Source: Hyaloraphidium curvatum SAG 235-1
Taxonomy: Eukaryota > Fungi > Monoblepharomycota
Length of the DNA stretch: 64,000 bases
Direction of reading: 5' to 3'
NCBI GenBank assembly: GCA_025558095.1
Contig: JAIVFI010000005.1
Span: forward strand, 620,001 to 684,000
In this document: positions 3,967-42,842 of the stretch, one piece after another
How positions within the stretch are numbered: the stretch's first letter is position 1
How the letters are laid out: each line of letters opens with the position of its first letter
The notes under the pieces: model-generated
Seen by the model: only the letters and a program-made list of their open reading frames with translations
Database searches by the model: none
What the model was told of the DNA's origin: nothing
Translations under genes and position numbers: made by a program

Positions 3967-4515
3967 TTAGAAAAGAATGCCATCGTCGGGGCCGACCCAC
4001 CAGAGCGATGCGTTCTTGCTCCTTGGCCTTTTACCCATCAGCGAAAAGACGTACGCCCCTCCGGTCATGTTTCCTCTTTCCGGGATCTGCCCAACCTGCC
4101 GCATCATATCGAGTATGTCGTTGCAGCCCTGGTACCGGAGCAGCTTCCCGTCCCTGAACTCGGCCAGCAGGTCGAACCCGTCCGACGCCATCCGCCGGCT
4201 GCCGTGCTCGGCCGGGCCGGTCGCCTCGGCGACCCAGTGGACCATCATGCTCGCGTCGTCGGCGCCGAAGAAGTGGCCCTTGATGGTGAACTTGAGGTCC
4301 GGGTATATCGCCCAGAACCTAGAAAAGTAGCTCTCCAGCTCGGCGTTGACCCCGTGGATCACCCGCGGCCAGAAGATCTGCTCGTCGAAATGCACCTCGG
4401 GGTCGAGAATCTCGCGGAAGAGCGAGAAGTCGCGCGAGTTCCACGCGTCGGCCCACTTCCGTGCAAAGTCCACGAGGAACGCGCGGTCAGGCTTCCACGC
4501 AGCGGGGTCGGGCAT
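3967..4515 (-). CDS. SnoaL/NTF2-like (ester cyclase family) protein, intron-less, about 182 aa
   Basis: W-ADAWNSRD..LDPEVHFDE..HG..F-W-AIYPDLKF..HW..TG..DGFD..EFRDGK..D..MMRQVG pattern typical of SnoaL-like proteins. ATG at 4515 preferred over the upstream ORF start. Confidence 0.8.
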   Translation of the reverse strand: MPDPAAWKPDRAFLVDFARKWADAWNSRDFSLFREILDPEVHFDEQIFWPRVIHGVNAELESYFSRFWAIYPDLKFTIKGHFFGADDASMMVHWVAEATGPAEHGSRRMASDGFDLLAEFRDGKLLRYQGCNDILDMMRQVGQIPERGNMTGGAYVFSLMGKRPRSKNASLWWVGPDDGILF

Positions 4516-4919
4516 GGTGGGCGGGGTGCGCAGGAGTGGAGGACGGCGAATGTCGCGCACGGCGGTGCGCGACTGCTTGTTCGCGCAGGGCGGTTCGCGA
4601 TTACGGCGAACGTCTCGCGGCTTTGCGCGATTGGTTGCTCCGCACGAGCTTTTGTACGGGGGCCGGGGAAACGGTAAACCACCGAAAACGGGTCCAGTCG
4701 GCTCGCCCAGCCGACCGCCGATCGGCATATAGTGCCATGGCTGGGAGGCCAGTAGTGCTCAGTAGTGCAAACAGTAGTGCCCAACTCCAGTTACGCCACG
4801 AGCTGGTTACTAGAAGTGAGGGCGATCAACTAGCGTAAGGCAGTCAGGGCGGCCGCCGAACCATTCTATCGCAGAAGATCTATGCAATATGCACCACTCG
4901 GAAATCCACCGATGCCGCC

Positions 4920-9702: not shown

Positions 9703-10243
9703 TCGTCGTCGCCGGCCTGGGCGGGCGGTGCGATCAAACCGCTCGCATTCGCCAAGCCAGTCACGGAAGACAGTGGAAAATGGAAAGACCACTGCTGGAT
9801 GAATTTCGAGCACGGATGTCGTCCATCCAGGTCCCCGGCCGGATCGGCCGGCCCGTGCCGTGGCTGGGTCCGCCGTCGGGGGCTTGCAAAAACACAGCAA
9901 TGCTGGAAGCACTTCAGGAGGTCTCGAATGAATGTAAAGCGCTCGAGTCACCTTCACACAGCGAGATCCATTCATAAATTGGAACTGGATCGGGACGGTT
10001 CCGGCTCCGCCCCGGGCACGAGTGCTGACCAGTGCTGCTGGCCCTCAAAACCGCCAGTGCCTCCATTGCAACATGCAGCTAGCTTACAGCAATCTGATCC
10101 GTGCTCATGCTACAGCTAGCTAGCGGTGAGCGGGTGGATCTGCGGAACCAGCGCGACCCAATCACGAACACGGCGCCTCGCGGGACGCCCGTCCACAACG
10201 GCTCTCGGATCCCGGACCTTCACGCGGGGACATGCGATAACCA

Positions 10244-28280: not shown

Positions 28281-28464
28281 GCAGCGATCGGCGCCCGTGG
28301 GCAGGATATGCAGTTCCTTAATCATGGCTTTCTGTTTGTTATGTTCATTAGAGATACGGACCGGCGGTCCGGTGCCGATGGCAGCGATGACTTGGGGGCG
28401 ATCAGGGTCACCTGGGTCGGACCCAAAACCCCGCCGGGCCGCAGCACGATCGGGCGGGCCCCCG

Positions 28465-29631
28465 ATGGCGCTCGACGGGCGCACGCGGCTGGCGCTGCTC
28501 GTGTCGGCGGCGGTCGGCGCGCTGTGGCTGGTTTTTTTGGCGGCGGGAGCGGCGGGCGGCGGGCGGCGCGGGCTGGCGGGGCTCGCTGCGCTGCCGGCGG
28601 GCGCGCTGACGCCGGGCGTGCGGACGCGGCTGGCGGCGCTGTCGGCAGAATTGCGCGCGCTGGCCGGCGAGCTGGACGCCGCGGCGGGCGTCGGCCCGGG
28701 CCCGGGCACGGCGCCCGCCGACCTCGCCTACGTCAACCCGCGCAGGTGCGGCGCCTCCCCGTCGGAGCCCTTCCTCGCGTCGGACAAGGTCGCCGTGCTC
28801 GTCGAGACGCGCATGCACCCGCGGCTGCTGCCCGTGCTCGCAAACTTCCTCGCCGTGCTGCCGCTCGACTGGCGCCTGCAGCTCTTCCTCTCGGACGCGA
28901 ACGCGCCCGCCGTCGAGGCCGCGCCCGGGCTGAAGCACTGGCTGCGCCGCGGCAAGATCCGGCTGGAGCGGCTGGGCGACGTCTTCACGGACCCGCACTA
29001 CCGCTCCTCGTACAACGCGGTTATGAAGAACGCGACCTTCTGGCGCGCCGTGGACGGCGAGCACGTGCTCGTGTTCCAGACGGACGCCGCGTTGTGCCGC
29101 GCCTCGGCCAAGTCGGTCGAGGACTACCTGGACTGGGCGTTCGTGGGCGCCCCGTGGAACGAGGGCGCCAAGTGCGGCAACGGCGGCCTCTCGCTCCGCA
29201 AGCGCAGCGCCATGCTCGACGTCCTCCTCCGCCCCGACGGCCCCGCCGCGACCAACGAGGACGAGCACTTTTGCGCGCGCCTCCGCCACTTCGGCTACCC
29301 CATGCCCGACTTCGAAACGGGCCGCAGCTTCTCCATCGAGATGGCCTACTACCCCTCCCCCGTGGGCCTGCACCAGGTCTTTTACCACCACCGCATCGGG
29401 ACCGACTGGCTGTACGAGATACACCGGGGCTGCCCCGAGTCGAGGGTCATCTCGACGCCGCCGTGCAGGAGGACGGCGTGCGGGAACGACGCCAAGGTCA
29501 AGGCGGCGATGAACAGGACGGCGGTGTGCGAGGCGCCCTTCAAGGAGGCGAGGAAGGACCGGAGGGCGAGGGACAGGCCGGTCGAGTGCGACATCACGGC
29601 GGGGTTCGTGCAGCCCAAGAAGGGGCCGTAG
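28465..29631 (+). CDS. DUF5672 family putative glycosyltransferase, type II membrane, intron-less
   Basis: Signal-anchor (LALLVSAAVGALWLVFLAA), then KVAVLVETR, FW..VLVFQTD..C, FVGAPW, GNGGLSLRKRS and NEDEHF. Confidence 0.8.
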   Translation: MALDGRTRLALLVSAAVGALWLVFLAAGAAGGGRRGLAGLAALPAGALTPGVRTRLAALSAELRALAGELDAAAGVGPGPGTAPADLAYVNPRRCGASPSEPFLASDKVAVLVETRMHPRLLPVLANFLAVLPLDWRLQLFLSDANAPAVEAAPGLKHWLRRGKIRLERLGDVFTDPHYRSSYNAVMKNATFWRAVDGEHVLVFQTDAALCRASAKSVEDYLDWAFVGAPWNEGAKCGNGGLSLRKRSAMLDVLLRPDGPAATNEDEHFCARLRHFGYPMPDFETGRSFSIEMAYYPSPVGLHQVFYHHRIGTDWLYEIHRGCPESRVISTPPCRRTACGNDAKVKAAMNRTAVCEAPFKEARKDRRARDRPVECDITAGFVQPKKGP

Positions 29632-29745
29632 CGGGCGGGTGCGGGGGTTTGTTCCTTTGTGGCATGGTCGGCTTCGGGGCGCTCGGTTATACAGGAAAGG
29701 CCAATCCACACGGGCTGCGATGTGGCGCAAGGGGGTATAGAATCC

Positions 29746-30978
29746 CTAGCCGTCGTACAGCGCGTGCCACCTAGCCGCCATCGCAGCGTCCTGCCCGTAC
29801 CACGCCTTTGTCCTTTCTCGCTTCCACGCCAGCCCCTGGCACACTTCCTTGTTCCACGGCCTCGCGTGCGCGTACGCCTCGGGGTGCGCGACCATGCTCG
29901 CGTTGCCGCACGCGAACCCGAACATGGACCCGGGCCTGACCGCCGCGGGGTAGTCAAAGTTGGGGCAGCTGGGGCGCATCTCGTCCATCGGCACGCCGTA
30001 GCCCCACGTGTACGCGTCCCCCGATCTGTTCCCCGCGCCGGCGGGCAGGCAATCCGCCGGCGCAAACTCGGGCGGGCTCATGAGCCACGCCTCGTAAAAG
30101 TACCTGTCCACGCCCAGCCACGCGGTGTAGCAGCTCCCCGCGCCGGCGTTCAGCCGCGCGCGCTGCGTCCTGTCGGCGAAGCTCCGCTCGTCGTAGCTCC
30201 GCGGGGAAACGAGCGCGGCGATGTGGGAGCAGCGGGCCCACCAGAAGTTGCCGCTGTAGTGGGCCAGGGGGTACAGCGTCGCGCGGAGGCCGCACATGTC
30301 GAAGCGGTCCAGCGCGGCGAGGCAGCGGGGGGTGAGCACGGCGCAGTCCATCGCGCGGCGGACGTTGGTGTTTTCCGCCAGCGGTGTGTGCGAGCCCTTG
30401 TTGTGAAAGTACAATGTTCGGGCGTCCGGGTTGGATTTGCAGAAGGCGTAGAGACGCTCCAGGGTGTCCCCCTCGCTCCCCGAGGCCAGCGTCGCGGCCT
30501 TGTGGAACTTCTCCGGCGGGATCGGCGACCCCGGCAGCGGCAGCGTCAGATTCTCGGCGTGCGCACCGATGGCCACGTAGGTGATCAGGTCCAGTAGCGG
30601 CGCCAGCCCCGAGTCGTTGAGCACGCGGAGCTGCTCCGAGACTATGTTGAAGGCGTGGTCGGCGTTGGGCACGTAGACGTTGTAGAAGGCCACGATCTGG
30701 GAGGGTCGCGGGGAGGGAGGGGGACGCGTTGGCGGGAGGGAGCCCGGGGGTGGGGGGGGGTGGGGGGGATTGCGACCGGGAGAGGGGTCGCCGAGCACCG
30801 GTGCAGGAGGCGGGCGGACCACCGCGCCAGGCGCCGGCGGGGCCAGCAGGGGCCTCTTCGAAGCAAAGGTCTCCACTGTCTCGGAGTCAGTTGTACCGCC
30901 GTGGAGGGCCGCCAGAAGCACGACAAGCACAACGGCCGCGAGCAACGCGGCAAACGCCAGCTGCTGGCGGGGCTGCAT
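29746..30978 (-). CDS. type II membrane putative glycosyltransferase-like protein (YFHNKG / HYSGNFWW motif family)
   Basis: Anchor LAFAALLAAVVLVVLLAAL and Pro-rich stem (possible in-frame intron at about 30697-30798), then E..TL..LY.FC..LYFHNKGS, HYSGNFWWARCSHI and DRYFYEAW. Confidence 0.65.
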   Translation of the reverse strand: MQPRQQLAFAALLAAVVLVVLLAALHGGTTDSETVETFASKRPLLAPPAPGAVVRPPPAPVLGDPSPGRNPPHPPPPPGSLPPTRPPPSPRPSQIVAFYNVYVPNADHAFNIVSEQLRVLNDSGLAPLLDLITYVAIGAHAENLTLPLPGSPIPPEKFHKAATLASGSEGDTLERLYAFCKSNPDARTLYFHNKGSHTPLAENTNVRRAMDCAVLTPRCLAALDRFDMCGLRATLYPLAHYSGNFWWARCSHIAALVSPRSYDERSFADRTQRARLNAGAGSCYTAWLGVDRYFYEAWLMSPPEFAPADCLPAGAGNRSGDAYTWGYGVPMDEMRPSCPNFDYPAAVRPGSMFGFACGNASMVAHPEAYAHARPWNKEVCQGLAWKRERTKAWYGQDAAMAARWHALYDG

Positions 30979-31095
30979 GCCAGACAGACCTCCCGGCCCT
31001 CCAGGGCCCTCCCGACACGATGCAGAATGCAGACGACGGAGTGACAAGGGAATTGCCGCACTTGGGCCGGGGTCCATTTCATCGCCGCAGCGCAG

Positions 31096-32148
31096 ATGGA
31101 CGTCCGTCGGTTAGGCGGCGCGGCGCTCGCCTTCACCGGCTCGCTCCTCCTTTACTCTTTGTTTTTCTCTGCCGGCGACGACCCGCGGGTGGCGCTGGCC
31201 GGCGGGCGCGCGGACGACGCGCCGTCCATAAAGTGCCCGCCGAAGCAGCGCTCGCCCTTCCCGACGTCCCGCAAGGCCGCCGTGCTCGTCGAGCCCGTCG
31301 CGCACACGCTGCTGGTACCGGCGGTCGACAGCGCCGTGGCGCACCTCCCGTGGGATTGGAAGATACTCCTCTTCGTGCCGGACGCCGTCGCCGCGGAGGT
31401 CGCGACCAAGCCGATGCTGAAGGACCTCCTGGCGATCGGCAAAATCCGGACTATGCCCAACATCTACGGGACGCAGGCCGACGCCCTGCTCAACGCGACC
31501 TTCTGGCGCGCGCTGGACGCGGACCACGTGCTGGCCTTTGGAGCCGGTACCGCCATGTGCATGGCCGCCAACCGCACCGCGGACGACTTCCTGGACTACG
31601 ACTATGTCGACGCCGCGTGCGGCTCCCCCGCACCGCCCGACGAGGCCGCGGCGTTTGCCTCCGCCCCCGGCCCCGTGCTCCCGGGCTCGACCAACCGCGC
31701 CCCGCGCTCCGCCTTCGCCTCGATCATCCCGAACCTCCTCCCCCGCTCCAACCTGACCGACAGCGCGCGCACCTCCCGCATCCTCCTCCTCTCCCGCTCT
31801 GCCACCCTCTCGGCCCTCTCCTCCCTCGCCCCGCCCGACCCCGCCTCGGCCAAGGGCGACCCCTCCACCTACCTCTGCCGCGCGCTCACCTCCTCCGGCT
31901 CCCGCGTGGCCTCCCCGCAGCTCGCCGCCTCGCTCGCCGTCGGCCCGGTGTGGCACCCGTCCCCGTTCGCCGTGGACTCGTCGCACCGCACCCTGGCGCT
32001 GCACCCCGAAAGGCTGGACGCGCTGTACGAGGAGTGCCCCGAGGCGGTGCTGCTGGCGGATTGGGAGGTGGAGGCGGCGGCGTGCACGTCGGGGGATATG
32101 GCGGCGCTGGATTACTTGGAAGTGGACAAGTTCTGCGCGGGCGGTTGA
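31096..32148 (+). CDS. divergent DUF5672 paralog lacking the predicted catalytic motifs
   Basis: Aligns by eye with 28465-29631 (KAAVLVE, LPWDWKILLF, NATFWRALDADHVL, DFLDYDYV, ECPE), but QTD, GNGG and NED are replaced. Confidence 0.7.
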   Translation: MDVRRLGGAALAFTGSLLLYSLFFSAGDDPRVALAGGRADDAPSIKCPPKQRSPFPTSRKAAVLVEPVAHTLLVPAVDSAVAHLPWDWKILLFVPDAVAAEVATKPMLKDLLAIGKIRTMPNIYGTQADALLNATFWRALDADHVLAFGAGTAMCMAANRTADDFLDYDYVDAACGSPAPPDEAAAFASAPGPVLPGSTNRAPRSAFASIIPNLLPRSNLTDSARTSRILLLSRSATLSALSSLAPPDPASAKGDPSTYLCRALTSSGSRVASPQLAASLAVGPVWHPSPFAVDSSHRTLALHPERLDALYEECPEAVLLADWEVEAAACTSGDMAALDYLEVDKFCAGG

Positions 32149-32540
32149 GGGGGGCGCATGGCGGGGAAGGCGGCGAGGCAGCGCCGGGGGGACGGGCCTG
32201 TGGCGGGCAACGTGCCCGCTGACGCGGGGCTCGCTGGCGCTCGCGGGCCGCTCCGCGGCAAAGCTACATGGGAAGCAGCGGCGGGGACGCAGCACCATTC
32301 CGCCGTGCGAGTTAGAGTCAGCGTCCGTTCGCGCACCAATAATGTAGAGGGGGATCTCGCGCCGCTCCTTGGCGACCTGCTCGAAGACGGGGCCCGCGTC
32401 CGGCCATGACGTTGCGACCCGCGGCTTCCGAGTGAAACAGACACAGCTCTATCAATAAGTTGGATTCGAAAACAGTAGATAGATGCACCTCGAGATGGCA
32501 TCATGGCTTGATTAGTCGACGAAAATGATCAAAGCTGGAG

Positions 32541-33236
32541 CTACAACGGCACCGTCGGGCAGGTCTGCGCATTCTTGACCAGCGAGGTGTCGCCCGGGAC
32601 CGAGACCCAGTACTGGTCGCTCGGACCGCAGCTTGCTACTAGGGACCAAACGCGGCACACCTTGCCGACGTGGTTGAACGAGGCGAAGTTGCAACCCGGA
32701 GCTGGATAGGTTTCGCAGTAGGTCTTGCACGCCTCGAACGTGTCGCTGGAGTGATCCGGCTCGCTCGCGCCTGCATCACAGAAGATGCCGGCGCACTGGA
32801 GGTAGGGGGATGCCTCTACAACCGGCGAGGTTGCGGCGGTGAGTGCGCGGCGAGTCGGCCGGCTCCCGACGGGGCCCACCGTAGCGGCGGTACAGCCCGC
32901 CGGCATCCTTGAAGACCTGTTCGACGCACGCAACGTGCACACGCAACGTGGCCTTCGGGCGTGCCCGGGAAGCCGAACTCGCTGGGCACGGGGGATCAGA
33001 GCGGGCGGGGTGGGAAAGCGATCGGGCGTCGCTACCAGAAGGCGGAGACGTCGCAGTCCGCGCAAGAGCGGCGGAAGACGGCGGAGGTCTTGGAAGAGGG
33101 CCTGGCCGGGCAGGAAGGAGGGGTGAGTCGTCGCCGGTGGGGATGTGGCGGCGCGACGGCGCGGGCCTACATGGCGGCAGTCCGTTAAGCCGGCGGCGCC
33201 GAGCACGGCCAGGAGGACGAAAGCGACGGCGCGCAT
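32541..33236 (-). CDS. small secreted Cys-rich protein, PAN/Apple-like C-terminal domain (probably spliced)
   Basis: Signal peptide MRAVAFVLLAVLGAA, and C-terminal FEACKTYC..GCNFASF..VCRVW with C-x3-C..C..C spacing. Confidence 0.5.
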   Translation of the reverse strand: MRAVAFVLLAVLGAAGLTDCRHVGPRRRAATSPPATTHPSFLPGQALFQDLRRLPPLLRGLRRLRLLVATPDRFPTPPALIPRAQRVRLPGHARRPRCVCTLRASNRSSRMPAGCTAATVGPVGSRPTRRALTAATSPVVEASPYLQCAGIFCDAGASEPDHSSDTFEACKTYCETYPAPGCNFASFNHVGKVCRVWSLVASCGPSDQYWVSVPGDTSLVKNAQTCPTVPL

Positions 33237-36200
33237 TCTGGGTGTTGGCGACGAAGGCCGAGGGGGATGTCTGTGGTGTCTGACTACTGATGATCCCCTC
33301 CTGCGCCGCATTTGTCATAAAAGTCGGTTTGGGACGCTGTACGCCCTTGGGACCGAACTCCGACGCACGCACTCCCGTGCATGGAGGTCGGCGCGCCGCG
33401 TGGCAAATAGGACCTGTAGCGGAGACGCATATTGTAGGCGCGCGTTATGCTCTCGGGGCGTTCCAGTCCATTTCGTCCGTTATCCCATCGCGGAGTCCCC
33501 CAAGCGAAATCACCCCAACGGTGGCTGATCACGAGTTAGCCGACGAAATCACCCCGACGCCCGAAAACCATCAAAAACGTACAGAATCAATATTTCAGTG
33601 CAACCAATCAGCATGGAGGGCCTTGTGCTAAAGAGCAGCGGGATGGGTGCGCTTGACGGTTGGGGAACGTAGAGAGTCACGGGGGTTCGCAGGAAAACCA
33701 CTGGCTTTCTCGATGAATTCCAGGCTCTCTACTAAGCCCTTTCGCGATCTGCGCCTCGTCCCATGGATCGCGAAGAATGGCGAGAGTGCCTTCACCCGGT
33801 GCTCTGGGGACGCGCTGCACGGCCCACGACACCGCCCAAGCCTTTCTTTTGAGTCAGGCTTAAGTCACAACCTCACAACTTCGCACGCTCCAACCGAACA
33901 AATCGTGCTGCGATTCTCCAGCATGCCGGTTGCGCACCGCGTCGCATGCTCGGGACACGTTTGCCGGCCGGCGACTTCAACGACCTCGTTCGCGAAAAGC
34001 TGGGCGTTCTTGGCGCCATCCAGGACAACAAAATTAACCGGAATGGTCGCCATTGTGGAGCGAGAGTGTTTTCCGGCCATTTCCGTGTTCGTGACGAAAC
34101 GGTCGTACGTGAGGAATCGGTGACCCTGGGTCGACATCACCTTCGCGATTCTGAACGGCGCCTCTTCCCCACCGTCTTTCGTCCGCGTGTCGCTCGGCGC
34201 GTCGCAGGCAGCCGACGTTGCGACGTTGGAGGCGTTCTGCAGGCTCCGTGAGCAGCTGCTCGCCAAAGAGGAGGCAACCGGGTGCTATGCGTGCCGCAAA
34301 GACCCTTCGGAACCCGCCCTCGTCGGCGTGGCCCCCGGCCCGGGTCCCATCCGCGCCTTTGTCGTGCCCGCGTGCGGCGCCGGGGCGTGCCTCAGCGACG
34401 CGCGGAACGCGCTCGCCCGCCTGAAGCGCGGCCGTCTTCCCGCCGACAACGCCGCGTATTCGATCGACCTCGGCGTCTTCATCGCGGTCTCATGGCCGGC
34501 TGGGGCTCCCATCCCCGTCTTCGTGCAGGTGGCGAAGGTGACGATCGCAATCCTTCGATGCGCGTCCGCGCGAACCCGCACGCGAAGGGCCCGGAACGGC
34601 CGGCCGATCCGGGCGGCGTGGGAGACTTGCTTGGCACCCCGGCCGCCCCGCCTCCCTCGCTCCCACCCCCCGATCCCGATTCCGACGCGTCCTTCCCGCG
34701 TCCCAACACGTCCATATCATTAATTATTCAGCGCTGGCCGGGGGAGACGGCCCCGGTTCGCGAGAACCCTGCCGCGCCCAAAAGCCGGGGGGTCGCGAAG
34801 CCCCCTCCCCCCGGCCGGCCGAAAACCCCCGGCAATCGGGCCCAGCGCGCCCCGCCACGCGTCGCAAAATCCCCGCAGATCCCCCGCGGCGCCCGTCCGC
34901 GGCGGTTGGAGGGGGCGGGGTGCCGGGGGTGCGGTACCGCGGGGGCCCGCTTCCATAGGGGGGGCGGGGAGGGAAGGGCGTGGGATTGCATTCGACGCGC
35001 CGCGGGGGCCGGGGACCGGCGTGGAAGATGGCGAGATGTGCGGACTGCTGTGTGCGGGGGCGAGAACGCGTGCCCCGATGCAAGGGAAGGTGTATCCCCA
35101 CCCCGACGGCCGGTCTGGGTCGGAAAGGGGCAGAACACCGACCGAAGAAAAGACCACCTGACCTCCCCCACGCAAGCAGCGCGCCGCCGCCCCCGCGACG
35201 CGGTGCCGCGACTCGCCGTCAGCTCGCAGGCCGCCGGACGCGGCATCGGCCGCGGGCCCGTCGTCCCCGCGGACGCAGGGGCACCGCGCAACGACGCTGT
35301 CACCTGTCGGCTCCAGATCTCCCGACCCGACCGGCCCGCGCCCGCCGCGGCACTCGCGAAGGTGGGATCCGACTGAGAGCGGCGGGTGAGGGCGGGAGGA
35401 GGGCGGGCAGCGCGCGCGTCGCGCCGCATCGCGGGTCCGGAGAAAGGGCGGCGGGTGCGCGGTGCTCGGGCCGCCCTCGCCCGCGGTGCTCGGACCGCCG
35501 CCCGCCGCCCTCCTCCGCCTCAGAGACATGCGGCCGCCGCGCTCCCTCGCCGCCCCGCCGCGGTGCGCCGGCCGCCGCGTGTAGTCACCTCTCTGACTCC
35601 CCCCCTCCCTCCCGCAGCACCCCCCCCTTTCCCACGATGGACCCCTCCGCGCTCGAGTCGCGCCTCGCCGCCGCCGTGCTCGCCCTGCTCCGCCTGCCCG
35701 ACCCGCGCCCCGCGCTCGCGGCGCTGCACCTCTCCCTCCCGCCGCACGTGCACGTCATCCCCTCGCCCCGCGGCCCCCCGCCGCGCGCGGCTTTCGTCGT
35801 CGTCGGCTCGCGCCTCCCCGTGCGCGTCGCCCTCCCGGCACCGACCGCCCCCGCGGCGCCCTCCCCGCCGCAATCCCCGTCGACGCCCCCGCCGCGGGAC
35901 CGCCCCGCCGCGCCGCCAAAGCTCCGCCGGCGCAGGTCCGCCCCGCGGGAGCAGCCGACCCACCTGCCCTCGCCGCCGCCGGATCCGGCGTGCCAGCAGG
36001 GGGACGTCCCCGCGTCGCTCGCCAGGGCGCTCTTCCACTGTGCGTTCACCCCGCGGCCGTGCGTGCCCTCCTCTGACCTTCGTCCTCCCTCCTCCTCCTC
36101 GCAGGAACCCGGCCCGCGCCGCGCGCAGGTCCCTCCCTTCACCTCCCTCGCCACCGATACCTCTGCTCTCCCAACATACCTCTTCCTCTCTAGAACTCAT

Positions 36201-36734
36201 GACGCGGCCGCCCGGCGCGCCGCCCTCAACATCTTGCCCGCACAGCTCCCTCCCCGCCTTCCGGAAGGCGGACGTACAGCACATGTAGACAGGCGTAGGA
36301 TACCTCTTTGGCGATCGTTTGGAAAAGCCCGTGACGGGGCGGTGTAGATAGCTTCTTTCTTCGGCCGGAACGATGCATTCTTTTGCAGACGCCCCTTGCA
36401 GCGGAGCCCGTTCCTACCCGGCCCCTTCTGCCACCCCGTCGGATCCGGAGGGCGATCCCGTGCTCCGACCGGCTGCCGCGATCGGGCCTCCGCTCGCGCG
36501 GATCGCAGCGCGCGGGAAGCGCCGCCGCGCATCCGCCGTCGCCATGCTTACCCCGATGTGAGTGGCACCTGGTGAGTTGGAATGCATGCGATGGAGGGTT
36601 GCTAATGCGTCGTTGGCTGCCTCCTGTCCCTTTTGTCCACGAGCTATTCTCTAGAAAGGCACAGCCAGTAGGAACTTTGCGCGGGTTCACGCGCGTCCGC
36701 CGGATTTAAGCGCTGTCTCCCCCCCCTTAACCAA

Positions 36735-37183
36735 GCTCGCCGCCCTGCTCTCCGCCGCCGCGTACGTCGCGCGGGAGTTCCTCTCGGACCGCGCGGCGAT
36801 GTGCGGCCTGCCCAACCCGCGCCCGGGCAAGCTCCCCGTCGTCGGGCACACCTTCATGGGCGCCACGTGCCGCCAGCCGCCGCCGCGCGGCCGCCTACAC
36901 CATGGCGAACCACAACGACCCCGCGTACTTCCCGGACCCGGCGTCGTTCCAGCCCGAGAGGTTCCTGCCCCCGCGGAGCGAGGGCGACCCGCCCGGCCGG
37001 TTCCTGCCGTTCGGGGCCGGGCCGCGGATGTGCCTCGGGTTCGCGCTGGCCAAGATGGAGCTCGAGGTGTACCTCCACGAGATGATCAGGGGGTGAGAGG
37101 TGGAGCTCGTGGGGGAGCCGTCGGTGCCGACGATTCCGATGTTCTACGCGAGCCCGACGGTGAGGATGACCAGGCGGGGGTGA
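36735..37183 (+). pseudogene. cytochrome P450 remnant (internally deleted, premature stop)
   Basis: An N-terminal anchor plus LPNPRPGKLPVVGHT lies about 40 nt from DPAYFPDPASFQPERF..FLPFGAGPRMCLG in another frame. An in-frame TGA at 37094-37096 precedes the final beta-strands. Confidence 0.75.
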
Positions 37184-37377
37184 AACGTGGACGGGGCGGT
37201 GGGTTTCGCCGTTGGAAAGCGTGTAGGAGTTTCGCCATGCCTTGTTAGTCGTTGCGTCGGCAAGGCCTGTAGAAGATCCGGGTCCGGAAGGATCACTTCG
37301 TTGGTGGCTGGATGGACCGCGGCAACCGATCCGGTCTGAAACCCCGGCACGACCACCGACCGACCCCGGCCCGTTAT

Positions 37378-38523
37378 ATGCCGCCGCCGGGGCCCTTCGT
37401 GCGGCCGGCCATTTTCCTCGCCGGGCTCGCGATCGGCCTGTTCCTCCGCCCGGCGGCGCAGCCCGCCCCATCCGGTGCGCCGAACCCTGGCCTCCGGGGC
37501 GCCGATCCCCTCCCCACGGCGACACATGCATGCAACGCAACCCTCCTGCAGCAACGGTGCCGCCCTGCCGCCGCTCGGCCCCCCTCCGCGGCCCGGCGCC
37601 GGACACGCCGCCCGCCCCCTGTGCCCTTCGCCGACGCCGTCCTCCCCATCCTCCGCGAATGGGGCTGCGGCCACCGCAACCTCGAGATCCCCCGCATCTT
37701 GCTCCCCGCCCTGGGCGGCCGGGAATTCGACCCCCCGCGCCACGGCCGCGGCCGCTTCGTCGTCGACGTCGGGCTGGGCCCCGGGGCGGACGAGACGTTC
37801 GCGGCGGTGGAGAACGGGTTCGTGGCGTTTTCGTTCGAGCCCGATGCGGGGAGCGTGGCGGAGATCGGGAGGAAGGCGGGGGAGAGGAATCTGACGGGGA
37901 GGATGCGGTTCGTGTCGCCAGAGCCGGGGAGGGCGTTCGACGCCTCCGAGCTGCCGAGGCCGCCGCCCGATCCCGAGGTCCGGGGATTCGCGTACGTGTT
38001 CCACGCCGCGCTTGGGGACTCGCATGGGACCGCCGGGCTGCGTGGATCGGGCGCCGAGGCGCAGGTGGTCGCGGACCCGCCAGACGGCTCGGGAGGCGTC
38101 GCGCTGCTCCGCCTGGACGACGCCGTCCCCGCCTGGGCCGACCCCGTGTACCTGCTCAAGATCGACACCCAGGGCCACGAGCTCAAGGTGCTCCGCGGCG
38201 CGCGCAGGCTGCTCCCCCGCGCGCGGTACGTGCTGTACGAGTACTCCCCGCGGCTCATGCAGCGCGGAAAGCTCGGCGACGACGCGGCGCTGCTGCGGAT
38301 GCTGCCACGCATGGGGTTCCTGTGCTTTGATGCGATGGGGGAGCATCTGGCTTTGCCGCGGCCGGGGAGGCTGGGGAGGTGGAGGGAGGAGCTTCTCGAC
38401 TGGCAGAGGTACGGGCCGGGGGTGCCGTTCCCGGGGGAGCCGGACAGGATCGGACCGTGGGAGGACGTGGTGTGCGCCAACGTCGCGGCGATGCTCAAGG
38501 ACAGGTCGCCGGACCCACGGTGA
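37378..38523 (+). CDS. FkbM-family SAM methyltransferase with N-terminal signal-anchor, intron-less
   Basis: VVDVG..AFSFEP..FHAALG..LRLDD..YLLKIDTQGHELKVLRGA..LYEYSP, with anchor AIFLAGLAIGLFL. Confidence 0.85.
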   Translation: MPPPGPFVRPAIFLAGLAIGLFLRPAAQPAPSGAPNPGLRGADPLPTATHACNATLLQQRCRPAAARPPSAARRRTRRPPPVPFADAVLPILREWGCGHRNLEIPRILLPALGGREFDPPRHGRGRFVVDVGLGPGADETFAAVENGFVAFSFEPDAGSVAEIGRKAGERNLTGRMRFVSPEPGRAFDASELPRPPPDPEVRGFAYVFHAALGDSHGTAGLRGSGAEAQVVADPPDGSGGVALLRLDDAVPAWADPVYLLKIDTQGHELKVLRGARRLLPRARYVLYEYSPRLMQRGKLGDDAALLRMLPRMGFLCFDAMGEHLALPRPGRLGRWREELLDWQRYGPGVPFPGEPDRIGPWEDVVCANVAAMLKDRSPDPR

Positions 38524-38797
38524 GGCGGTTTGATTGCTTGATGGGGTCGGCGGGGACGGATCGCGATGCTGGAGGCATGACTCATCATGGGAACGGCGGC
38601 CTGATCCGGCACGGAAACCGGCACGGGAACGGAAATTCGTCGATGCCGGGCAGGATGCCGCCGATCGCGCCGCCGCAGCCTGCGGTCTGCGGATCCTGCG
38701 GTGGATGCGCCTGGCTGACTGCAGCGCGGGTTCGGCCTCCAAGTCCCCCTGGCGGATTGCCGCGCCGTTGCCTCACCGGACAGCCCTCCCGCCCCTC

Positions 38798-40087
38798 ATG
38801 GACGCCGGCAGCCCCGCGAACGCCGCGAACGCGCGGGCGCGGTGGGCGACGTGGGCGGCGGTCGCGCTGGTCGCGGTGGTCGGCTTCAACGTGCTCGGCG
38901 CGCTGCGGGAGGACCCGCCGGCACTCGCGGGCGCGCCCGCGGCGGTGCTCGGCGGGCGGGTGCGGCCGCCGGAGGACAGAGGCGGCGCGCGGGGGGCGGC
39001 GGGGCGGGGCTGCCCGCGGCGCCCGCGGTCGCCCGTCGCCCGGCGCGAGAAGGAGCTCGGACTGGAAACGCACCTGCCCCTCGCGGCGCTGCGGGATCTG
39101 CACGCGCCCGAGTTCAACGCGTCGTCGGTGAACTGCGCCGACCTCGGCTGGGCGCCGCGGGCGGAACCGGCCGCGCTCGTCGACCTGATGCTGTTCAACG
39201 GCGAGGCCGACATGCTCGCCGTGCACATGGCCGAGCTCGACGCCGTGGTGGACGTCTTCCTCGTCGTCGAGGCCAACGTGACCTTTTCGCACCGGCCCAA
39301 GCCGATGTACTTCCCCGACCTGTACCTGGACGAGTTCGCCGGCGCGTGGCGCGACCAGGTCGCCTTCCACCCCGTCGAGGTGCCCGTCTCGGTCGGGGCC
39401 CACTGGCTGACGGAGAACTACATCCGCAACCAGTCCCGCCCCGCGCTGGAGCATCTCCTCCGCACCTCCCCCCGCCTCAGGGGCCGAAGCGCGTCGGACG
39501 TCTTCCTCGTCATCTCGGACACGGACGAGGTCCCGTGCCCGCACAAGCTGGCCTACTTCCGGCACTGCCGCGCCGAGCCGCCCAGCCAGCCCTTCCCCGT
39601 GCCCCTCGGCCTGGGCACCTTCTACTACTACTCGCTGCGGTGGGACACGGGCCGCGCCTGGGGCGGCGCGCCCGTCGTGTGGCCCGCGCCCATGGTGCTC
39701 GCCGAGGGGTTCAACGGCGACCAGAAGCGGGACCGGCACGCCCCGGTGCACCCGGCCCTGCGCAAATGCGGCTGGCACATGTCGTACTTCATGTCCCCCA
39801 CGCGGATCCGCGAGAAGCTGCTCGCCTTCAGCCACAAAGAGTATTCGGGCCCGCCGTACACCACCCTCGAGCACATCCGGGACAAGCTGAGCCGCGCCGA
39901 GAGCCTGTTCACGCCCACACCCATGAAGCTCGCGGTGCCGGATCCCAGGGACTCGAAGGCGGAGATACCGCGCTTGATCAGGGCCAACGAGTGCTACTTC
40001 AAGGAGTGGCTGGGGCCGTTCGGATGCTCGTACGGGGAGGACGATGACGAGGATGGGGAGGGGTCGGATGAGGATGAGGATGAGTAG
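38798..40087 (+). CDS. glycosyltransferase family 17 (MGAT3/GnT-III-like beta-1,4-GlcNAc transferase), type II membrane, intron-less
   Basis: D..LFNGE.DML..ELD.VVD.F.VVEAN.TFS..PKP, E..IRN, ISDTDEVP (DxD), YYYS..W, GWHMSYF and KLLAFSHKEY. Confidence 0.88.
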   Translation: MDAGSPANAANARARWATWAAVALVAVVGFNVLGALREDPPALAGAPAAVLGGRVRPPEDRGGARGAAGRGCPRRPRSPVARREKELGLETHLPLAALRDLHAPEFNASSVNCADLGWAPRAEPAALVDLMLFNGEADMLAVHMAELDAVVDVFLVVEANVTFSHRPKPMYFPDLYLDEFAGAWRDQVAFHPVEVPVSVGAHWLTENYIRNQSRPALEHLLRTSPRLRGRSASDVFLVISDTDEVPCPHKLAYFRHCRAEPPSQPFPVPLGLGTFYYYSLRWDTGRAWGGAPVVWPAPMVLAEGFNGDQKRDRHAPVHPALRKCGWHMSYFMSPTRIREKLLAFSHKEYSGPPYTTLEHIRDKLSRAESLFTPTPMKLAVPDPRDSKAEIPRLIRANECYFKEWLGPFGCSYGEDDDEDGEGSDEDEDE

Positions 40088-40217
40088 ATGGCGAATGCAG
40101 GCGCCGTCGAGCTCGGAGCTGTTGCCTGGAAGCGGTGTCCACTTCCAGGGTCCGATCAGGATGAGTTGGCCGATCGGCTGCTGCGGCCCCGCAACGTTCC
40201 GCCGCCCGCTCCCAGCG

Positions 40218-41180
40218 ATGCGGCAGCTCGTCCTCCCCGCCGCCGGCGCCGCGGTGCTGCTCATCGCGCTGTTTGCCGCGTTTTCGGGCGGGCCCGGTGC
40301 GGAGGACGGCGTGGGGAAGGCGGCCGCGGGGGGCTGCCCGAAGCTGTTCTGCCCGGCGTGCCCCGTGCCGCCCCCGTGTCCGGCGCTTGCCGGCGAGCTG
40401 GCAGCAGGAACCGTGCCCGCACCGGCGCCGGCACCGGCACCGGCACCGGCACCGTGCCCGCCGTGCGCCGCCCCCGCTCCGCAGTACACCGGCCCCGCCG
40501 GCGGCCCGCCGCCGCCGGCCCCCGGCGCCGCCAACGAGAGCTACTGGCGCTGCCCCTCCGGCGTCTTCTCCGCCGACGGCGCGTGCGAGGACCCCTCGGA
40601 CGGCGGCGCGTGGCGGTACCGCCGGCCCGACGGCACGTGCTCGCTGGACGAGGGCAGCGTGGCGGGGGACCGCGGGACCGTGCGGGCGCTTCCCGTGGTG
40701 TTTCCGGACGTAAAGTCGGCGTTGGATTTGGGCGGGGGCATCGGGCTCTACCTCACGGGGTTCAGGGACGCGGGTGTGCCCGAGGGGGAGCTCGTGGTGG
40801 TGGAGCCCGAGGACCTGGCAAACTGCACCGTCAGGGGCGTGCGGCAGCTCCGGGGCACCGTGCCGAGCGTGGACCCCGGGCGCAAGTTCGATCTCGCCAT
40901 GTCGATCGAGGTCGCGGAGCACCTGCCCCCCGGCCGCGGGCTCGAGGCGGCGCTGGTGGACTTCCTCGTGCGGACGGCAGCAAAGTACGTCGTCTTCTCG
41001 GCGGCACACCCGGGGCAGGCGGGGCAGGGGCACGCCAACGCCAAGGAGCCCGTGTGGTGGCGCGGGGCCTTTGAAAGCAGGGCGTGCGTGGCGTTCGACG
41101 TCGAGAGGACGGCGGCGGTGCACGCCAAGGCGGTGGACATGCTCAAGACCAACCTGCACGTGTTCAACAAGACCTGTTGA
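40218..41180 (+). CDS. class I SAM-dependent methyltransferase (bacterial surface-glycan type) with signal-anchor and (PA)n stem, intron-less
   Basis: SALDLGGGIG (motif I), FDLAMSIEVAEHLP and VVFSAAHPGQAGQGHANAKEP.WW. Confidence 0.82.
   Translation: MRQLVLPAAGAAVLLIALFAAFSGGPGAEDGVGKAAAGGCPKLFCPACPVPPPCPALAGELAAGTVPAPAPAPAPAPAPCPPCAAPAPQYTGPAGGPPPPAPGAANESYWRCPSGVFSADGACEDPSDGGAWRYRRPDGTCSLDEGSVAGDRGTVRALPVVFPDVKSALDLGGGIGLYLTGFRDAGVPEGELVVVEPEDLANCTVRGVRQLRGTVPSVDPGRKFDLAMSIEVAEHLPPGRGLEAALVDFLVRTAAKYVVFSAAHPGQAGQGHANAKEPVWWRGAFESRACVAFDVERTAAVHAKAVDMLKTNLHVFNKTC
40418..40454 (+). repeat. (GCACCG)n hexamer tandem repeat encoding a Pro-Ala linker
   Basis: gcaccggcgccggcaccggcaccggcaccggcaccg is seen directly, inside the methyltransferase stem. 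Confidence 0.7.
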
Positions 41181-41330
41181 GCTTGCAGGGGACGGGCACG
41201 GCGAGGTGGCGCGGAAGATTGCACCGTGCCTGCCACAGAAGCATGGATGCCCCCCTGGCAGGGGCTTGCAACAGATTGCCAAAGAGGTATCTGGCCCTGC
41301 AGCAGCAAATGCAGCAACCGCTATTGAGCT

Positions 41331-42542
41331 TCAGCGCGCTTCAGCGCGGGCCGGCCTGGCCTTGGCATCCAACCGCTTCAGCATGTTGACCAGCAAGAAC
41401 GTCCAGTACGCGTACGGGTCGTCGTTGGAATAGTGCAGGCAGTCCGTATGCCCGTCCCCCTTCAGGCCCGTAGGCAGGGAAACGTCCAGTGGGAGGACGG
41501 AGGGATACTCCCCGTTGATCAGGTCCACCACCAGCTTGCTCTGGTTCCAGAAGGTGCCCCAGGAGTAGGGCAAGCCTTCGCCCGGCTGGACCTCCGCGAG
41601 GGGTTCCTTGATTCCACCGCATCCGGCGTGGCCAGGGGGCGTGGTCCGCCAGAACTGAAGTGCATGGGGCGCCGCCCCGCGGACGTACCCGAACGCGACG
41701 CGCACCTCGTCCAGCAGCCTCTCATCTTGCTCGGGGTGTGCACCGCGGTTCATGATCACGATCCCCTTGTAGTGCCGGATCTGTTCGGTCCAGCGCATGT
41801 CGATCGCCCACCCCTGCAGCGCCCTCGCCGGGTTCCCGTCCATCAGCAGCCTGTCCGCCCTCAGGTACCGAATCTCGGACCCGTTGCAGATGGCGTCCCT
41901 GTAGGGCAGGCCTTGTATGTGGGGCACGATCGAGGGGTCGGGCTCCGGGTCCCACGATTTCGGCGTTACCCGGAGCGGGGGCAGCCTCTGGTCGCTGCCG
42001 AGCGTCCGGTTCAGGTACTCGTAATGCTGCCGCGTGATCGAATCCCCGACCAGCATCAGCGGCCGGCTTCCCAGCGCCGCGCAGACGGCCTCGCGGTCCA
42101 TCGTCGTCTCAAAGTCGGAACACCGCGGATCCGGTTCCCAGACGTAGCCCAAGCCGTGCACCGGCGGGTCCATCCTGGTCCAGTTCCCGAACCACGACCA
42201 GCAGTACGCCATCCTGCGCAGCGCGACGTAATCCGCCCCGTCCAGCACCAGGTCCGCCGTGAGCCGCAGGGAAGAGGCGCCGTGGGGCAGCGCGGCGGGG
42301 ACCGCAGGGCGCGGCGGGAACGCCGGCACCGGGCCGCCCAGAAAGTCCCACTGGGAGCCGCGCGATGGCGGCTCGCCTTTGCCCGGCGTGAACTCCAGCG
42401 GTTCGGGGGTCGTCATGCCCGGCACCGCCGCATCGCGTGCGGCCGGCGCCGGGCCGCCGCGCGTCAGGCCCCAGCACGCCACCACCGTCACCGCCAGAGC
42501 CGCAAGCGCGATCTCCCGGCGCAGGTGCGGCGCTGGCGTCAT
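41331..42542 (-). CDS. PC-esterase/TBL-like SGNH O-acetyltransferase, type II membrane, intron-less
   Basis: Anchor IALAALAVTVVACW, then G.W..Y.WEP..C, LMLVGDSITRQHY, NRGAH, FWRTTPPGH..C and DCLHY (GDS plus DxxH). Confidence 0.85.
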   Translation of the reverse strand: MTPAPHLRREIALAALAVTVVACWGLTRGGPAPAARDAAVPGMTTPEPLEFTPGKGEPPSRGSQWDFLGGPVPAFPPRPAVPAALPHGASSLRLTADLVLDGADYVALRRMAYCWSWFGNWTRMDPPVHGLGYVWEPDPRCSDFETTMDREAVCAALGSRPLMLVGDSITRQHYEYLNRTLGSDQRLPPLRVTPKSWDPEPDPSIVPHIQGLPYRDAICNGSEIRYLRADRLLMDGNPARALQGWAIDMRWTEQIRHYKGIVIMNRGAHPEQDERLLDEVRVAFGYVRGAAPHALQFWRTTPPGHAGCGGIKEPLAEVQPGEGLPYSWGTFWNQSKLVVDLINGEYPSVLPLDVSLPTGLKGDGHTDCLHYSNDDPYAYWTFLLVNMLKRLDAKARPARAEAR

Positions 42543-42842
42543 GGGAGCCGGCTGGGAATGTGGAGCGTTACGTTCTTGCCGGACAGCTGGGCTGTGCCCT
42601 GTGACTCGTTCCAAAATCCCATGGGGATTCAGGCAAAACCTGGGGCGCAAAGCACGCATCCGTTCCTCAATGGTATTCCGCTCTCGATGGTAATGCTACA
42701 GCTTGTAAAGTCAGAGAACAAAAGGGCCGCATGGCCGAAAGAAAACGCCCTGGGGCGGATCGCATCAGGTATCCCGTCCTTCCTCACCCTCACATTCCCT
42801 CCATCCGTCCTTCATTGCTCCACCGCACCGCGCCGCACGGCC

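Follow-up and report, generated by a model that had tools for sequence, protein, structure and literature searches.

A candidate glycan biosynthesis-and-decoration cluster of seven secretory-pathway genes in Hyaloraphidium curvatum

Seven single-exon genes, g1 to g7, occupy positions 28465-42542 of the Hyaloraphidium curvatum DNA analysed here (the window, 64,000 nucleotides), at the coordinates previously noted. We estimate a probability of about 60% that they constitute a genuine glycan biosynthesis-and-decoration cluster, made of lumenal type II enzymes: three predicted active transferases, an inactive protein (g3), two methyltransferases and one O-acetyltransferase. The earlier note had described seven genes in 14 kb that share one architecture and belong to unrelated glycan-enzyme families. 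Both points held, the families being assigned as two DUF5672 proteins, DUF8361, FkbM, GT17, a methyltransferase (g6, weakly) and a PC-esterase-like protein. As to the contrast it drew between an intron-less cluster and intron-rich neighbours, the seven genes are single-exon, but long single exons (563-1004 aa) are likewise found in several other genes of the window, with others visible only as domain fragments.

The third-position GC (GC3) of each of the seven reading frames is 0.84-0.92, and the proposed start codons lie where coding-type GC3 sets in. The start codons of g2 and g3 diverge from a 117-nt spacer (30979..31095), which could possibly serve as a shared promoter. The other adjacent genes are 114-274 nt apart, with spacers of 130-274 nt in the tandem same-strand run g4-g5-g6. 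The exception is the g3-g4 gap of ∼5.1-5.2 kb, which divides the cluster into two. This gap holds the C-terminal exon of a cytochrome P450 gene (36731..37093, forward strand), which matches PF00067 (1e-21) at profile positions 367-430 of 462, including the haem-binding loop, and was not assigned to the cluster. No long ORF was detected for the remainder of the P450 gene.

Each of the seven proteins shows exactly one hydrophobic peak, located inside the first 45 residues (19-residue Kyte-Doolittle mean of 1.67-3.09; g1 2.47, g2 3.09, g4 1.75, g5 2.02 and g6 2.53), in addition to a tail of positive charge and a stem rich in P, A, G and S. In g2 the anchor is followed by a Pro-rich stem, and the stem of g6 is Pro/Ala-rich. 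The same hydropathy check revealed no such anchor-and-stem pattern in either of the two genes that flank the cluster. These hydropathy profiles support membrane anchoring of g1 to g7 in the manner of Golgi type II enzymes, and we infer that the catalytic domains of all seven are on the lumenal side in the secretory pathway, presumably in the Golgi.

Three of the proteins are predicted to be active glycosyltransferases: g5 (GT17), g2 (DUF8361) and g1 (DUF5672). The g1 gene (28465..29631, forward strand) codes for a type II membrane protein that matches the DUF5672 family (Pfam PF18922, 3.3e-24). Its AlphaFold model has a mean pLDDT of 80, with a core above 90, and the top 50 matches in a structural search with this model were all GT-A glycosyltransferases (LARGE1, Z 12.9; BcsA, 12.6; LgtC, 12.2). 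The model thus predicts a GT-A glycosyltransferase; in other proteins DUF5672 is found fused to GT90 and GT32 domains. The type II membrane protein encoded by g2 (29746..30978, reverse strand) carries the motifs YFHNKGS and HYSGNFWW; its own database entry (P0001) is annotated as PF27674 (DUF8361), and an atlas search against DUF8361 clusters gave 0.94. The core of the g2 model (residues 91-230, pLDDT ∼85) is best matched by GT-A and nucleotidyltransferase folds, such as ArnC (Z 10.0) and mannosylglycerate synthase (Z 9.8), so that a GT-A-like fold is predicted. The g5 gene (38798..40087, forward strand) encodes a type II membrane protein that matches GT17 (PF04724) at 4e-22 (79 bits, cut-off 26), and viral GT17 shares both its acidic SDTDE block and its GWHMSYF block without change. 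The public 299-aa gene call for g5 begins within the first conserved strand.

The remaining protein of this type, g3 (31096..32148, forward strand), is a degenerate DUF5672 paralogue. It aligned with g1 by BLASTP (1e-28, 29% identity), and no match was obtained in a Pfam profile search. It has FGAG in place of FQTD, and a ∼60-residue insert costs it the GAPW and GNGGLSLR blocks; the changed positions are nearly invariant across the DUF5672 family alignment. Although its GC3 is still 0.92, the lost motifs indicate that g3 is probably a catalytically dead pseudo-enzyme.

The other three genes code for putative decorating enzymes. The type II membrane protein g4 (37312..38523, forward strand) belongs to the FkbM family of SAM methyltransferases, with matches to PF05050 (1e-7, 32.6 bits, cut-off 22.7) and TIGR01444 (2e-10, 41.1 bits, cut-off 37.7). 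The g6 gene (40218..41180, forward strand) encodes a type II membrane protein whose Pfam matches are all sub-threshold (Methyltransf_23, 2.7e-5, 24.4 bits, under the cut-off of 27; Methyltransf_12, 0.085); with its GxGxG-type motif, it is probably a class I SAM methyltransferase. The g7 product (41331..42542, reverse strand), also a type II membrane protein, is divergent and fell under the Pfam PC-esterase threshold. It retains the GDS and DCLH (DCxH) motifs, and hhalign against the PF13839 proteins of the same genome gave a probability of 97.1% (E 5e-11, 270 columns), in an alignment that brings both motif blocks, GDS and DCxH, into register. An atlas search against PC-esterase clusters gave 0.96. 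On these alignments and motifs, g7 is a member of the PC-esterase superfamily and probably a glycan O-acetyltransferase. A Cas1_AcylT (RWA-like) gene, unlinked to the cluster, is present on contig C13, hence lumenal O-acetylation is feasible in this organism.

At 70% GC the window contains long spurious ORFs in many frames, so that some or all of the seven could in principle be non-functional, as pseudogenes or as chance open frames. The loss of family-invariant residues in g3 would fit such a reading, as would the public gene models of g5 and g7, which differ from the ORFs used here. We consider it very improbable, since six of the seven ORFs have a significant family or profile match in the coding-GC3 frame, g1, g2, g5 and g7 keep the family-invariant residues, and a g7 orthologue (P0163, 63% identical) in a relative matches g7 in length and architecture.

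The six cluster families have low copy numbers and together account for ∼43 loci in the 31.9-Mb genome: five Pfam-detected DUF5672 loci plus the degenerate g3, five GT17 genes, four DUF8361, three of the g7 family plus three PC-esterases, 19 FkbM and three g6-like copies. In 200,000 random placements, at least six loci, or at least five families, never fell within 15 kb (Poisson estimate ∼2e-12). Outside the cluster the closest pair of different families is 48 kb apart, and no cluster family recurs within 10 kb of any of the 13 paralogues examined, all of them from the DUF5672, GT17, DUF8361 and g7 families. The clustering of seven loci of six families in 14 kb is therefore non-random, far beyond chance.

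A rival to a single pathway is a neutral neighbourhood of independent secretory-pathway enzymes that serve several different glycans, in a genome whose intronless glyco-genes tend to come together, for instance by duplication in place, by retroposition into permissive regions or as blocks are rearranged. The genome has other, smaller groups of glyco-genes (GT4-like, WsaF-like and DUF5672 on contig C26; GT17 and GT25 on contig C1), so that such local grouping may reflect a general tendency of the genome and not one pathway. The ∼5.1-kb spacer and the fact that g1 and g3 are local paralogues point the same way, as does the comparison with relatives. Conserved synteny was not found in the few relatives available: on metagenome contig L031 the g1 orthologue (55-63% identical) lies beside a GT22 gene and is without g2 downstream, g2 is likewise not downstream on L030, and on L192, from a relative, the g7 orthologue is at a contig end, with upstream genes unrelated to the window. 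Against a neutral origin stand the departure from random expectation, the smaller size and different families of the other groups, and the fusion of the same family combinations in giant-virus polypeptides. We regard it as a serious but clearly less probable reading than a genuine cluster. As for expression, the only public run found, its type guessed, is available as contigs only; these reach the 3′ portions of g5, g6 and g7, but do not cover g4.

The viral linkage was counted in an unbiased set of 80 GT17-seeded giant-virus loci and in a second set of 80 DUF8361-seeded loci. DUF8361 was present in 14 of the 80 GT17-seeded loci, in 13 of them fused to GT17 in one ORF, and SAM methyltransferases in seven, with four fusions to GT17. 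DUF5672 lay within 4.3 kb of GT17 in 5/80 loci, and in 2/80 an FkbM protein related to g4 was within 4.7 kb. Among the DUF8361-seeded loci, 20-21 of 80 had a methyltransferase, and in a Pirellula genome a methyltransferase is immediately upstream of DUF8361. Individual viral contigs encode a GT17-DUF5672 fusion (L084), a single 1800-aa ORF with GT2, GT17, Methyltransf_24 and DUF8361 (L169), a fusion of GT17 with two Methyltransf_24 domains and GT4 (L147), or GT17, DUF5672 and DUF8361 inside 7 kb (L221). These fusions and adjacencies support an independent tie between GT17, DUF8361, DUF5672 and SAM methyltransferases, and the occurrence of the same combinations in single polypeptides argues for shared substrates. 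The PC-esterase family was never near GT17, DUF8361 or DUF5672 in the viral or bacterial loci examined; what links g7 to the cluster is adjacency alone.

The abundance of these families in giant-virus contigs (at least 333 DUF5672, 284 DUF8361 and 511 GT17 relatives), the shared combinations and the lack of introns in all seven genes would also be expected if the segment had been acquired as a block, from a giant virus or some other donor, in which case linkage would reflect common descent of the segment and not selection for clustering. Such a relic is improbable. The GC3 of the cluster is host-like, whereas viral loci have a median GC of 0.32-0.35; each of the seven proteins has a type II anchor of the eukaryotic kind; and the orthologues of g1 and g7 in relatives are 55-63% identical, against at most 35% for viral copies. 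Moreover, a DUF8361 tree unites g2 with the three paralogues dispersed in its genome (SH-aLRT 89) and places this group with other sequences from eukaryotes (99), separately from each of the 50 viral ones.

For a genuine cluster, we infer a single common product and co-regulation of the seven enzymes, as well as the donor and acceptor sugars and the order of steps. In the Golgi, the transferases would lengthen a glycan carried by secreted or wall glycoconjugates, with g5 adding a β-linked HexNAc by analogy with MGAT3. The g4 and g6 methyltransferases would O-methylate the newly added sugars, perhaps sequentially, as domain 3 of chlorovirus A064R and then A061L do. The g7 protein would O-acetylate the glycan, with acetyl groups supplied via the unlinked Cas1/RWA-type gene.

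The statement that no fungal cluster of this kind had been described was too strong, given the five-gene galactosaminogalactan (GAG) cluster of Aspergillus and Metarhizium (PMC8224951). As in H. curvatum, unrelated carbohydrate-active enzymes are encoded together on the chromosome, and the GAG set makes and modifies one extracellular glycan. Its enzymes (an epimerase, a large membrane synthase, hydrolases and a deacetylase) belong to none of the g1-g7 families; it is maintained in different species and experiments have addressed its function (PMC8224951), whereas the H. curvatum cluster has been described here from sequence and showed no such conservation in the few relatives compared. The likeness to a bacterial O-antigen locus, also proposed in the earlier note, holds for the enzyme types, since O-antigen and capsule loci have glycosyltransferases, FkbM-type methyltransferases and acetyltransferases side by side, and the tandem g4-g5-g6 run resembles an operon. 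In contrast to those loci, however, the H. curvatum genes are eukaryotic and each needs its own promoter; flippase, polymerase and sugar-nucleotide synthesis genes are absent from the cluster; and no GT17 match was found in 14 control prokaryote genomes, with DUF8361 in only 12 of ∼185,000 prokaryote species genomes. Animal MGAT3 (GT17), plant TBL and Cryptococcus Cas1p (PC-esterase) are Golgi enzymes that have the type II topology and catalytic families of the cluster proteins, although the divergence of g7 leaves it under the Pfam PC-esterase threshold. To our knowledge, their genes are unclustered in animals, plants and Cryptococcus.

The closest analogue found was instead the glycosylation module of giant viruses, whose contigs have GT17, DUF8361, DUF5672 and SAM methyltransferases in common with the fungal cluster. 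In the viruses, the methyltransferase domains belong to Methyltransf_24 and a PC-esterase partner was not seen; the fungal methyltransferases are FkbM or g6-like, g7 is present, and the proteins are separate, membrane-anchored and equipped with stems. By prediction, the majority of chlorovirus enzymes are soluble proteins of the cytoplasm, and GT17 is not mentioned in a review of giant-virus glycosylation (PMC9614988). Glycosylation gene clusters are present in Megavirinae, and A064R of chlorovirus PBCV-1 combines two rhamnosyltransferase domains with an O-2 methyltransferase, its neighbour A061L being an O-3 methyltransferase (PMC9614988), so that two methyltransferases can modify the same sugar in sequence. 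As in the arrangement proposed for H. curvatum, the glycosyltransferases and SAM methyltransferases of these viral modules are encoded together, and build and then methylate one glycan.

Hyaloraphidium curvatum is a monoblepharid fungus of the zoosporic lineage. The assembly that holds the window comprises 31.9 Mb in 55 contigs, and the window corresponds to positions 620001-684000 of contig C5. Since long ORFs occur in all six frames at the ~70% GC content of these 64 kb, reading frames were picked by third-position GC (GC3). From 28.2 to 42.7 kb of the window there are seven ORFs with a GC3 of 0.84-0.92, which is of the coding type; the coordinates and the count of seven genes reported in the earlier note were correct. 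With the likeliest start codon in the GC3 frame, these single-exon genes are g1 (28465-29631, +), g2 (29746-30978, -), g3 (31096-32148, +), g4 (37312-38523, +), g5 (38798-40087, +), g6 (40218-41180, +) and g7 (41331-42542, -). The contrast drawn at first between them and intron-rich neighbours could be verified in part only, several other genes of the window being long single exons too. A spacer of 5.1 kb parts g1-g3 from g4-g7 and holds an isolated cytochrome P450 C-terminal exon with the haem-binding loop (36731-37093, +; PF00067 at 1e-21). No long upstream exon was found for this P450, so that it belongs to an intron-rich gene or is a remnant. Immediately upstream of the cluster there is a DUF900 alpha/beta-hydrolase gene (26690-28150, +). 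In one giant-virus locus (L084) an alpha/beta hydrolase likewise follows GT17-DUF5672 and GT32 genes, which may be a coincidence.

GC3 climbs to ~0.9 at or just past the proposed start codons of g1-g7, and because the rise begins there, the N-terminal anchor and stem regions are coding. The membrane anchors attributed to these proteins were borne out by hydropathy analysis: exactly one strong hydrophobic segment was present in each of the seven (7/7), within the first 45 residues. The N-terminal tails are short, with a net charge of +1 to +4, and Pro, Ala, Gly and Ser abound in the stems. Neither of the two flanking proteins, the DUF900 hydrolase upstream and an acidic protein downstream, shows this tail-anchor-stem pattern. 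Hydrophobic N-termini are also found in eukaryotic DUF8361 homologues (the family of g2) and in the orthologue of g7 from a relative, with which g7 shares 63% identity. From their sequences, g1-g7 are predicted to be type II signal-anchor proteins, with the layout of Golgi enzymes and a lumenal catalytic domain.

The public gene models of g5 and g7 are probably wrong. For g5, the public model of 299 aa has its start within the first conserved strand of GT17 and has no anchor. That of g7, 467 aa long, uses an internal Met as its start, skips the stop codon and runs into the antisense strand of g6. An NCBI record on contig C5, 'hypothetical protein DFJ74DRAFT_656849, partial [Hyaloraphidium curvatum]', is identical to g7; an exact database look-up of the g5 gene model proposed here returned no record.

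The g1 product belongs to the DUF5672 family (Pfam PF18922, 85.8 bits, cut-off 24.4, E 3e-24). An alignment with g1 as the reference row revealed the nearly invariant residues Q205, D207 and D225, a GAPW block and an NGG-S-R block. A structural model built from 50 homologues had a mean pLDDT of 80, and its top 50 structural matches were all GT-A glycosyltransferases, with Z scores of 10.1-12.9 (LARGE1 12.9, BcsA 12.6 and LgtC 12.2). The g2 product is a DUF8361 protein: PF27674 is the precomputed annotation on its own database entry and on 9/9 homologues, and the atlas search concurs. Among its aligned homologues there is no variation in the motifs VAFYN, YFHNKGS and HYSGNFWWARC. The g2 model is confident in the core only, and its matches mix GT-A enzymes and nucleotidyltransferases (ArnC, Z 10.0; mannosylglycerate synthase, Z 9.8), so that the case for a GT-A fold is weaker for g2 than for g1. 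Searches of PDB sequences with g1, g2, g6 and g7 gave no significant match.

The homology of g3 to g1 was detected by BLASTP (1e-28), the sole evidence for it; g3 gave no Pfam match even at E 10. In g3 the GAPW and GNGGLSLR blocks have been lost, as have Q and D of the FQxD motif, all of them nearly invariant in the family. Because the Pfam match is absent and the invariant positions are lost, g3 was filed as a degenerate paralogue rather than as an active member of the family, and its product is probably inactive.

The g4 product was assigned to the FkbM family. It matched PF05050 with 32.6 bits (cut-off 22.7), but over profile positions 97-171 only, and passed TIGR01444 with 41.1 bits (cut-off 37.7); beyond this FkbM assignment, NCBIfam and PHROGs profile searches added nothing. 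The g5 product is a GT17 protein: it matches PF04724 over positions 57-302 of the 348 in the profile, with 79.2 bits (cut-off 26, E 4e-22), and D137, D139, E140 and G221-F227, the acidic and GWHMSYF blocks, are invariant relative to six viral and metagenomic GT17 domains. With g6, Methyltransf_23 reached 24.4 bits (cut-off 27, E 2.7e-5) and Methyltransf_12 an E of 0.085; the best PDB sequence match, a SAM methyltransferase, was not significant (E 1.1). On these sub-threshold profile matches, g6 is a probable class I SAM methyltransferase.

The PC-esterase profile PF13839 did not match g7, and a genome-wide search with it gave three other loci. The g7 orthologue of the relative (P0163) scored 17.5 bits with PF13839 (cut-off 27), and NXPE4_C scored 16-22 bits (cut-off 27). 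When the g7 family profile was aligned by hhalign with the bona fide PC-esterases of H. curvatum, a probability of 97.1% was obtained (E 5.3e-11, 270 columns), with the GDS and DC(L/S)H catalytic blocks in register. Both the GDS and the DxxH blocks are invariant across the four-member g7 family alignment, and the atlas search led from g7 to PC-esterase clusters with a score of 0.96. Judged by profile comparison and catalytic motifs, g7 belongs to the PC-esterase/SGNH superfamily, though it falls below the Pfam threshold. Lumenal O-acetylation by PC-esterases usually depends on a membrane partner of the Cas1/RWA type. A single Cas1_AcylT (RWA-like) gene was found in the genome, on contig C13 (601730-602919, -; 2e-54), unlinked to the cluster, and it is the likely acetyl-donor partner of the PC-esterase-type proteins of H. 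curvatum.

The loci of each family were counted by six-frame searches of the whole H. curvatum genome. These yielded 5 DUF5672 loci in addition to g3, 5 GT17 genes, 4 DUF8361 loci, 3 g6-like loci, 3 loci of the g7 family plus the 3 true PC-esterases, and at least 19 FkbM loci in 32 Mb. On contig C21, two of the FkbM loci are separated by 7.6 kb. Random placement of these 43 loci, repeated 200,000 times, never gave ≥6 loci or ≥5 families in 15 kb; the density observed, 7 loci of 6 families in 14.1 kb, has a Poisson estimate of ~2e-12. The concern that these families are so expanded that such runs would be common can therefore be set aside for the families counted here. Elsewhere in the genome, the closest pair of loci from different families of the six is 48 kb apart, and at 13 DUF5672, GT17, DUF8361 and g7-family paralogues no second member of the six families was found within 10 kb. 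The large DUF5672 and GT17 paralogues, each searched as two pieces, had no extra Pfam domains.

Two further glyco-gene groups, both smaller than g1-g7, were found. On contig C26 (~605.4-612.0 kb), GT4-like, WsaF-like and DUF5672 genes lie side by side (L007:4414-6438, -; L007:6309-8174, +; L007:8571-9998 with L020:2-1036, -). The WsaF-like product matches this bacterial rhamnosyltransferase family at 1.9e-34, the DUF5672 gene encodes 822 aa, and all have N-terminal hydrophobic segments. The group on contig C1 (~289-297 kb) comprises L009:4768-6156 (+), a GT17 gene across stretches L009 and L022, and L022:1808-2761 (-); here the GT17 paralogue lies 1.4 kb from a gene of the GT25 ('LPS biosynthesis') family, with an MFS transporter upstream. 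In view of these groups, glycan genes seem to be habitually grouped in this genome, with g1-g7 the largest example seen.

The evidence from fusion and adjacency that these families act jointly is the main new result. In IMG/VR giant-virus contigs, at least 333 relatives of DUF5672, at least 284 of DUF8361 and at least 511 of GT17 were found. By Pfam, one viral ORF (L084:9311-10771) is a GT17-DUF5672 fusion, followed by a GT32 gene, and another (L147:15053-18265) joins GT17, two Methyltransf_24 domains and GT4. An ORF of 1800 aa (L169:5171-10570, +) contains GT2, GT17 and Methyltransf_24 by Pfam together with an in-frame DUF8361, and GT17, a Methyltransf_24-type methyltransferase and DUF8361 are also joined at L226:5889-11348 (+) and L249:2-3103 (+). 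The multidomain enzymes of L169, L226 and L249 are 1,034-1,820 aa long. In order to avoid ascertainment bias, 80 viral loci seeded on GT17 alone were scanned with local HMMs. DUF8361 was present in 14/80, in the same ORF as GT17 in 13 of them, and a two-domain GT17-DUF8361 protein of ~505 aa recurs, L210:9989-11503 being one example. A methyltransferase was present in 7/80 (fused to GT17 in 4), DUF5672 lay 1.9-4.3 kb from GT17 in 5/80, and a relative of g4 (FkbM) lay ≤4.7 kb from GT17 in 2/80. Conversely, 20-21 of 80 loci seeded on DUF8361 had a methyltransferase, fused to DUF8361 in 11 ORFs. On giant-virus contig L221 (9995-17153), GT17, DUF5672 and DUF8361 genes, the trio also present in the fungal cluster, lie within 7 kb.

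A Pirellula genome carries a methyltransferase gene directly upstream of DUF8361, and DUF5672 forms fusions with GT90 and GT32 domains in other proteins. Scanning of metagenome data with GT17 returned four distant loci, with no partner families. Around DUF5672 homologues of other eukaryotes, we observed a polysaccharide deacetylase adjoining as a divergent pair (L202:1768-3216, -, and 3771-4793, +) and an O-fucosyltransferase-family gene ~7 kb off (L201:1-3040, +, and 10001-11116, +).

That domains are fused in a single polypeptide is strong evidence that they act on a common substrate, and these fusions tie g5, g2 and g1 to one another and to at least one methyltransferase function. The viral and bacterial GT17, DUF8361 and DUF5672 loci yielded no PC-esterase relative, and g7 hence stands outside this evidence.

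The GC3 of the cluster is host-like, against median GC values of 0.32-0.35 for the viral loci. Phylogenetic analysis of DUF8361 placed g2 with its three dispersed H. curvatum paralogues, and together these join other eukaryotes (SH-aLRT 99), apart from all 50 viral sequences. Both the host-like GC3 and this placement of g2 argue against an endogenous giant-virus element. Furthermore, relatives have orthologues of g1 and g7 that are 55-63% identical, and from composition, phylogeny and these orthologues we judge that the cluster did not arise by recent insertion of viral DNA.

The neighbourhood is not kept in relatives on the seven eukaryotic contigs available, a small sample in which a contig end cuts the comparison of g4-g7: no second cluster family was found beside the g1 and g7 orthologues or the DUF5672 and DUF8361 homologues. 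On metagenome contig L031 a GT22 gene adjoins the g1 orthologue with no g2 downstream, and g2 is absent from contig L030 as well. The g7 orthologue of the relative, on contig 12011 of run SRR26194948, lies 106 nt from the contig end, and the genes upstream of it are unlike those of the window; a g1 orthologue sits on contig 90447 of that run.

No 9-mer common to the upstream regions of the cluster was found. The 8-mer GCCGCAGC or its complement occurs at positions 28438, 31084, 38672 and 40180 of the window, 12-126 nt upstream of the starts of g1, g3, g5 and g6. Its presence in 4/6 upstream regions has a shuffled P of ~0.02, uncorrected and for a motif chosen after the fact; there are 20 copies across the window, and ~0.4 would be expected in the 1.36 kb of upstream sequence. 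We regard GCCGCAGC as a candidate shared promoter element, a lead only. A single public run was found to hold this stretch; guessed to be RNA and available as contigs only, it covers 39207-40078, 40628-42188 and 42659-42900. These contigs correspond to the 3' parts of g5, g6 and g7, with g4 uncovered; such a 3' bias would suit poly-A RNA, short of proof.

We put the probability that g1-g7 form a real, and probably functional, cluster at roughly 60%. More tentatively, and at somewhat less than even odds, the fungal cluster may be the cellular, unfused counterpart of a widespread, undescribed giant-virus module in which GT17, DUF8361, DUF5672 and a SAM methyltransferase share one protein; it would make a methylated, HexNAc-containing glycan, with g4 and g6 as fungal lumenal sugar O-methyltransferases. 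If so, DUF8361 and DUF5672 would be two uncharacterised glycosyltransferase families, and the glycan, also O-acetylated in the fungus, would be of a kind common to early-diverging fungi, other protists and giant viruses.

Clustering of glycan genes is usual in bacteria and giant viruses but rare in eukaryotes. A seven-gene cluster of the Golgi type in an early-diverging fungus would offer a compact, testable pathway and would give roles to DUF5672 and DUF8361, domains that are abundant in giant viruses and protists. To our knowledge, few enzymes that O-methylate glycans in the secretory pathway of eukaryotes are known, and the cluster would supply candidates. The fusions link the cellular with the viral glycosylation machineries and point to viral multidomain enzymes worth characterising. 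Our literature searches found no work on the function of DUF5672 or DUF8361, and nothing relevant on FkbM with Golgi.

The earlier note knew of no described fungal cluster of this kind. Fungal glycan clusters are in fact known already, the five-gene galactosaminogalactan cluster being an example, but its enzymes are entirely different from those of g1-g7 (PMC8224951). GT17 is absent from a review of giant-virus glycans (PMC9614988). In chlorovirus PBCV-1, A064R has two rhamnosyltransferase domains and a methyltransferase that acts on O-2 of the terminal rhamnose, and A061L, encoded nearby, methylates O-3 only once O-2 is methylated (PMC9614988). The order g4-g5-g6, a glycosyltransferase between two methyltransferases, fits a build-then-methylate scheme like that of PBCV-1, and the giant-virus glycosylation module is the nearest functional analogue of the fungal cluster.
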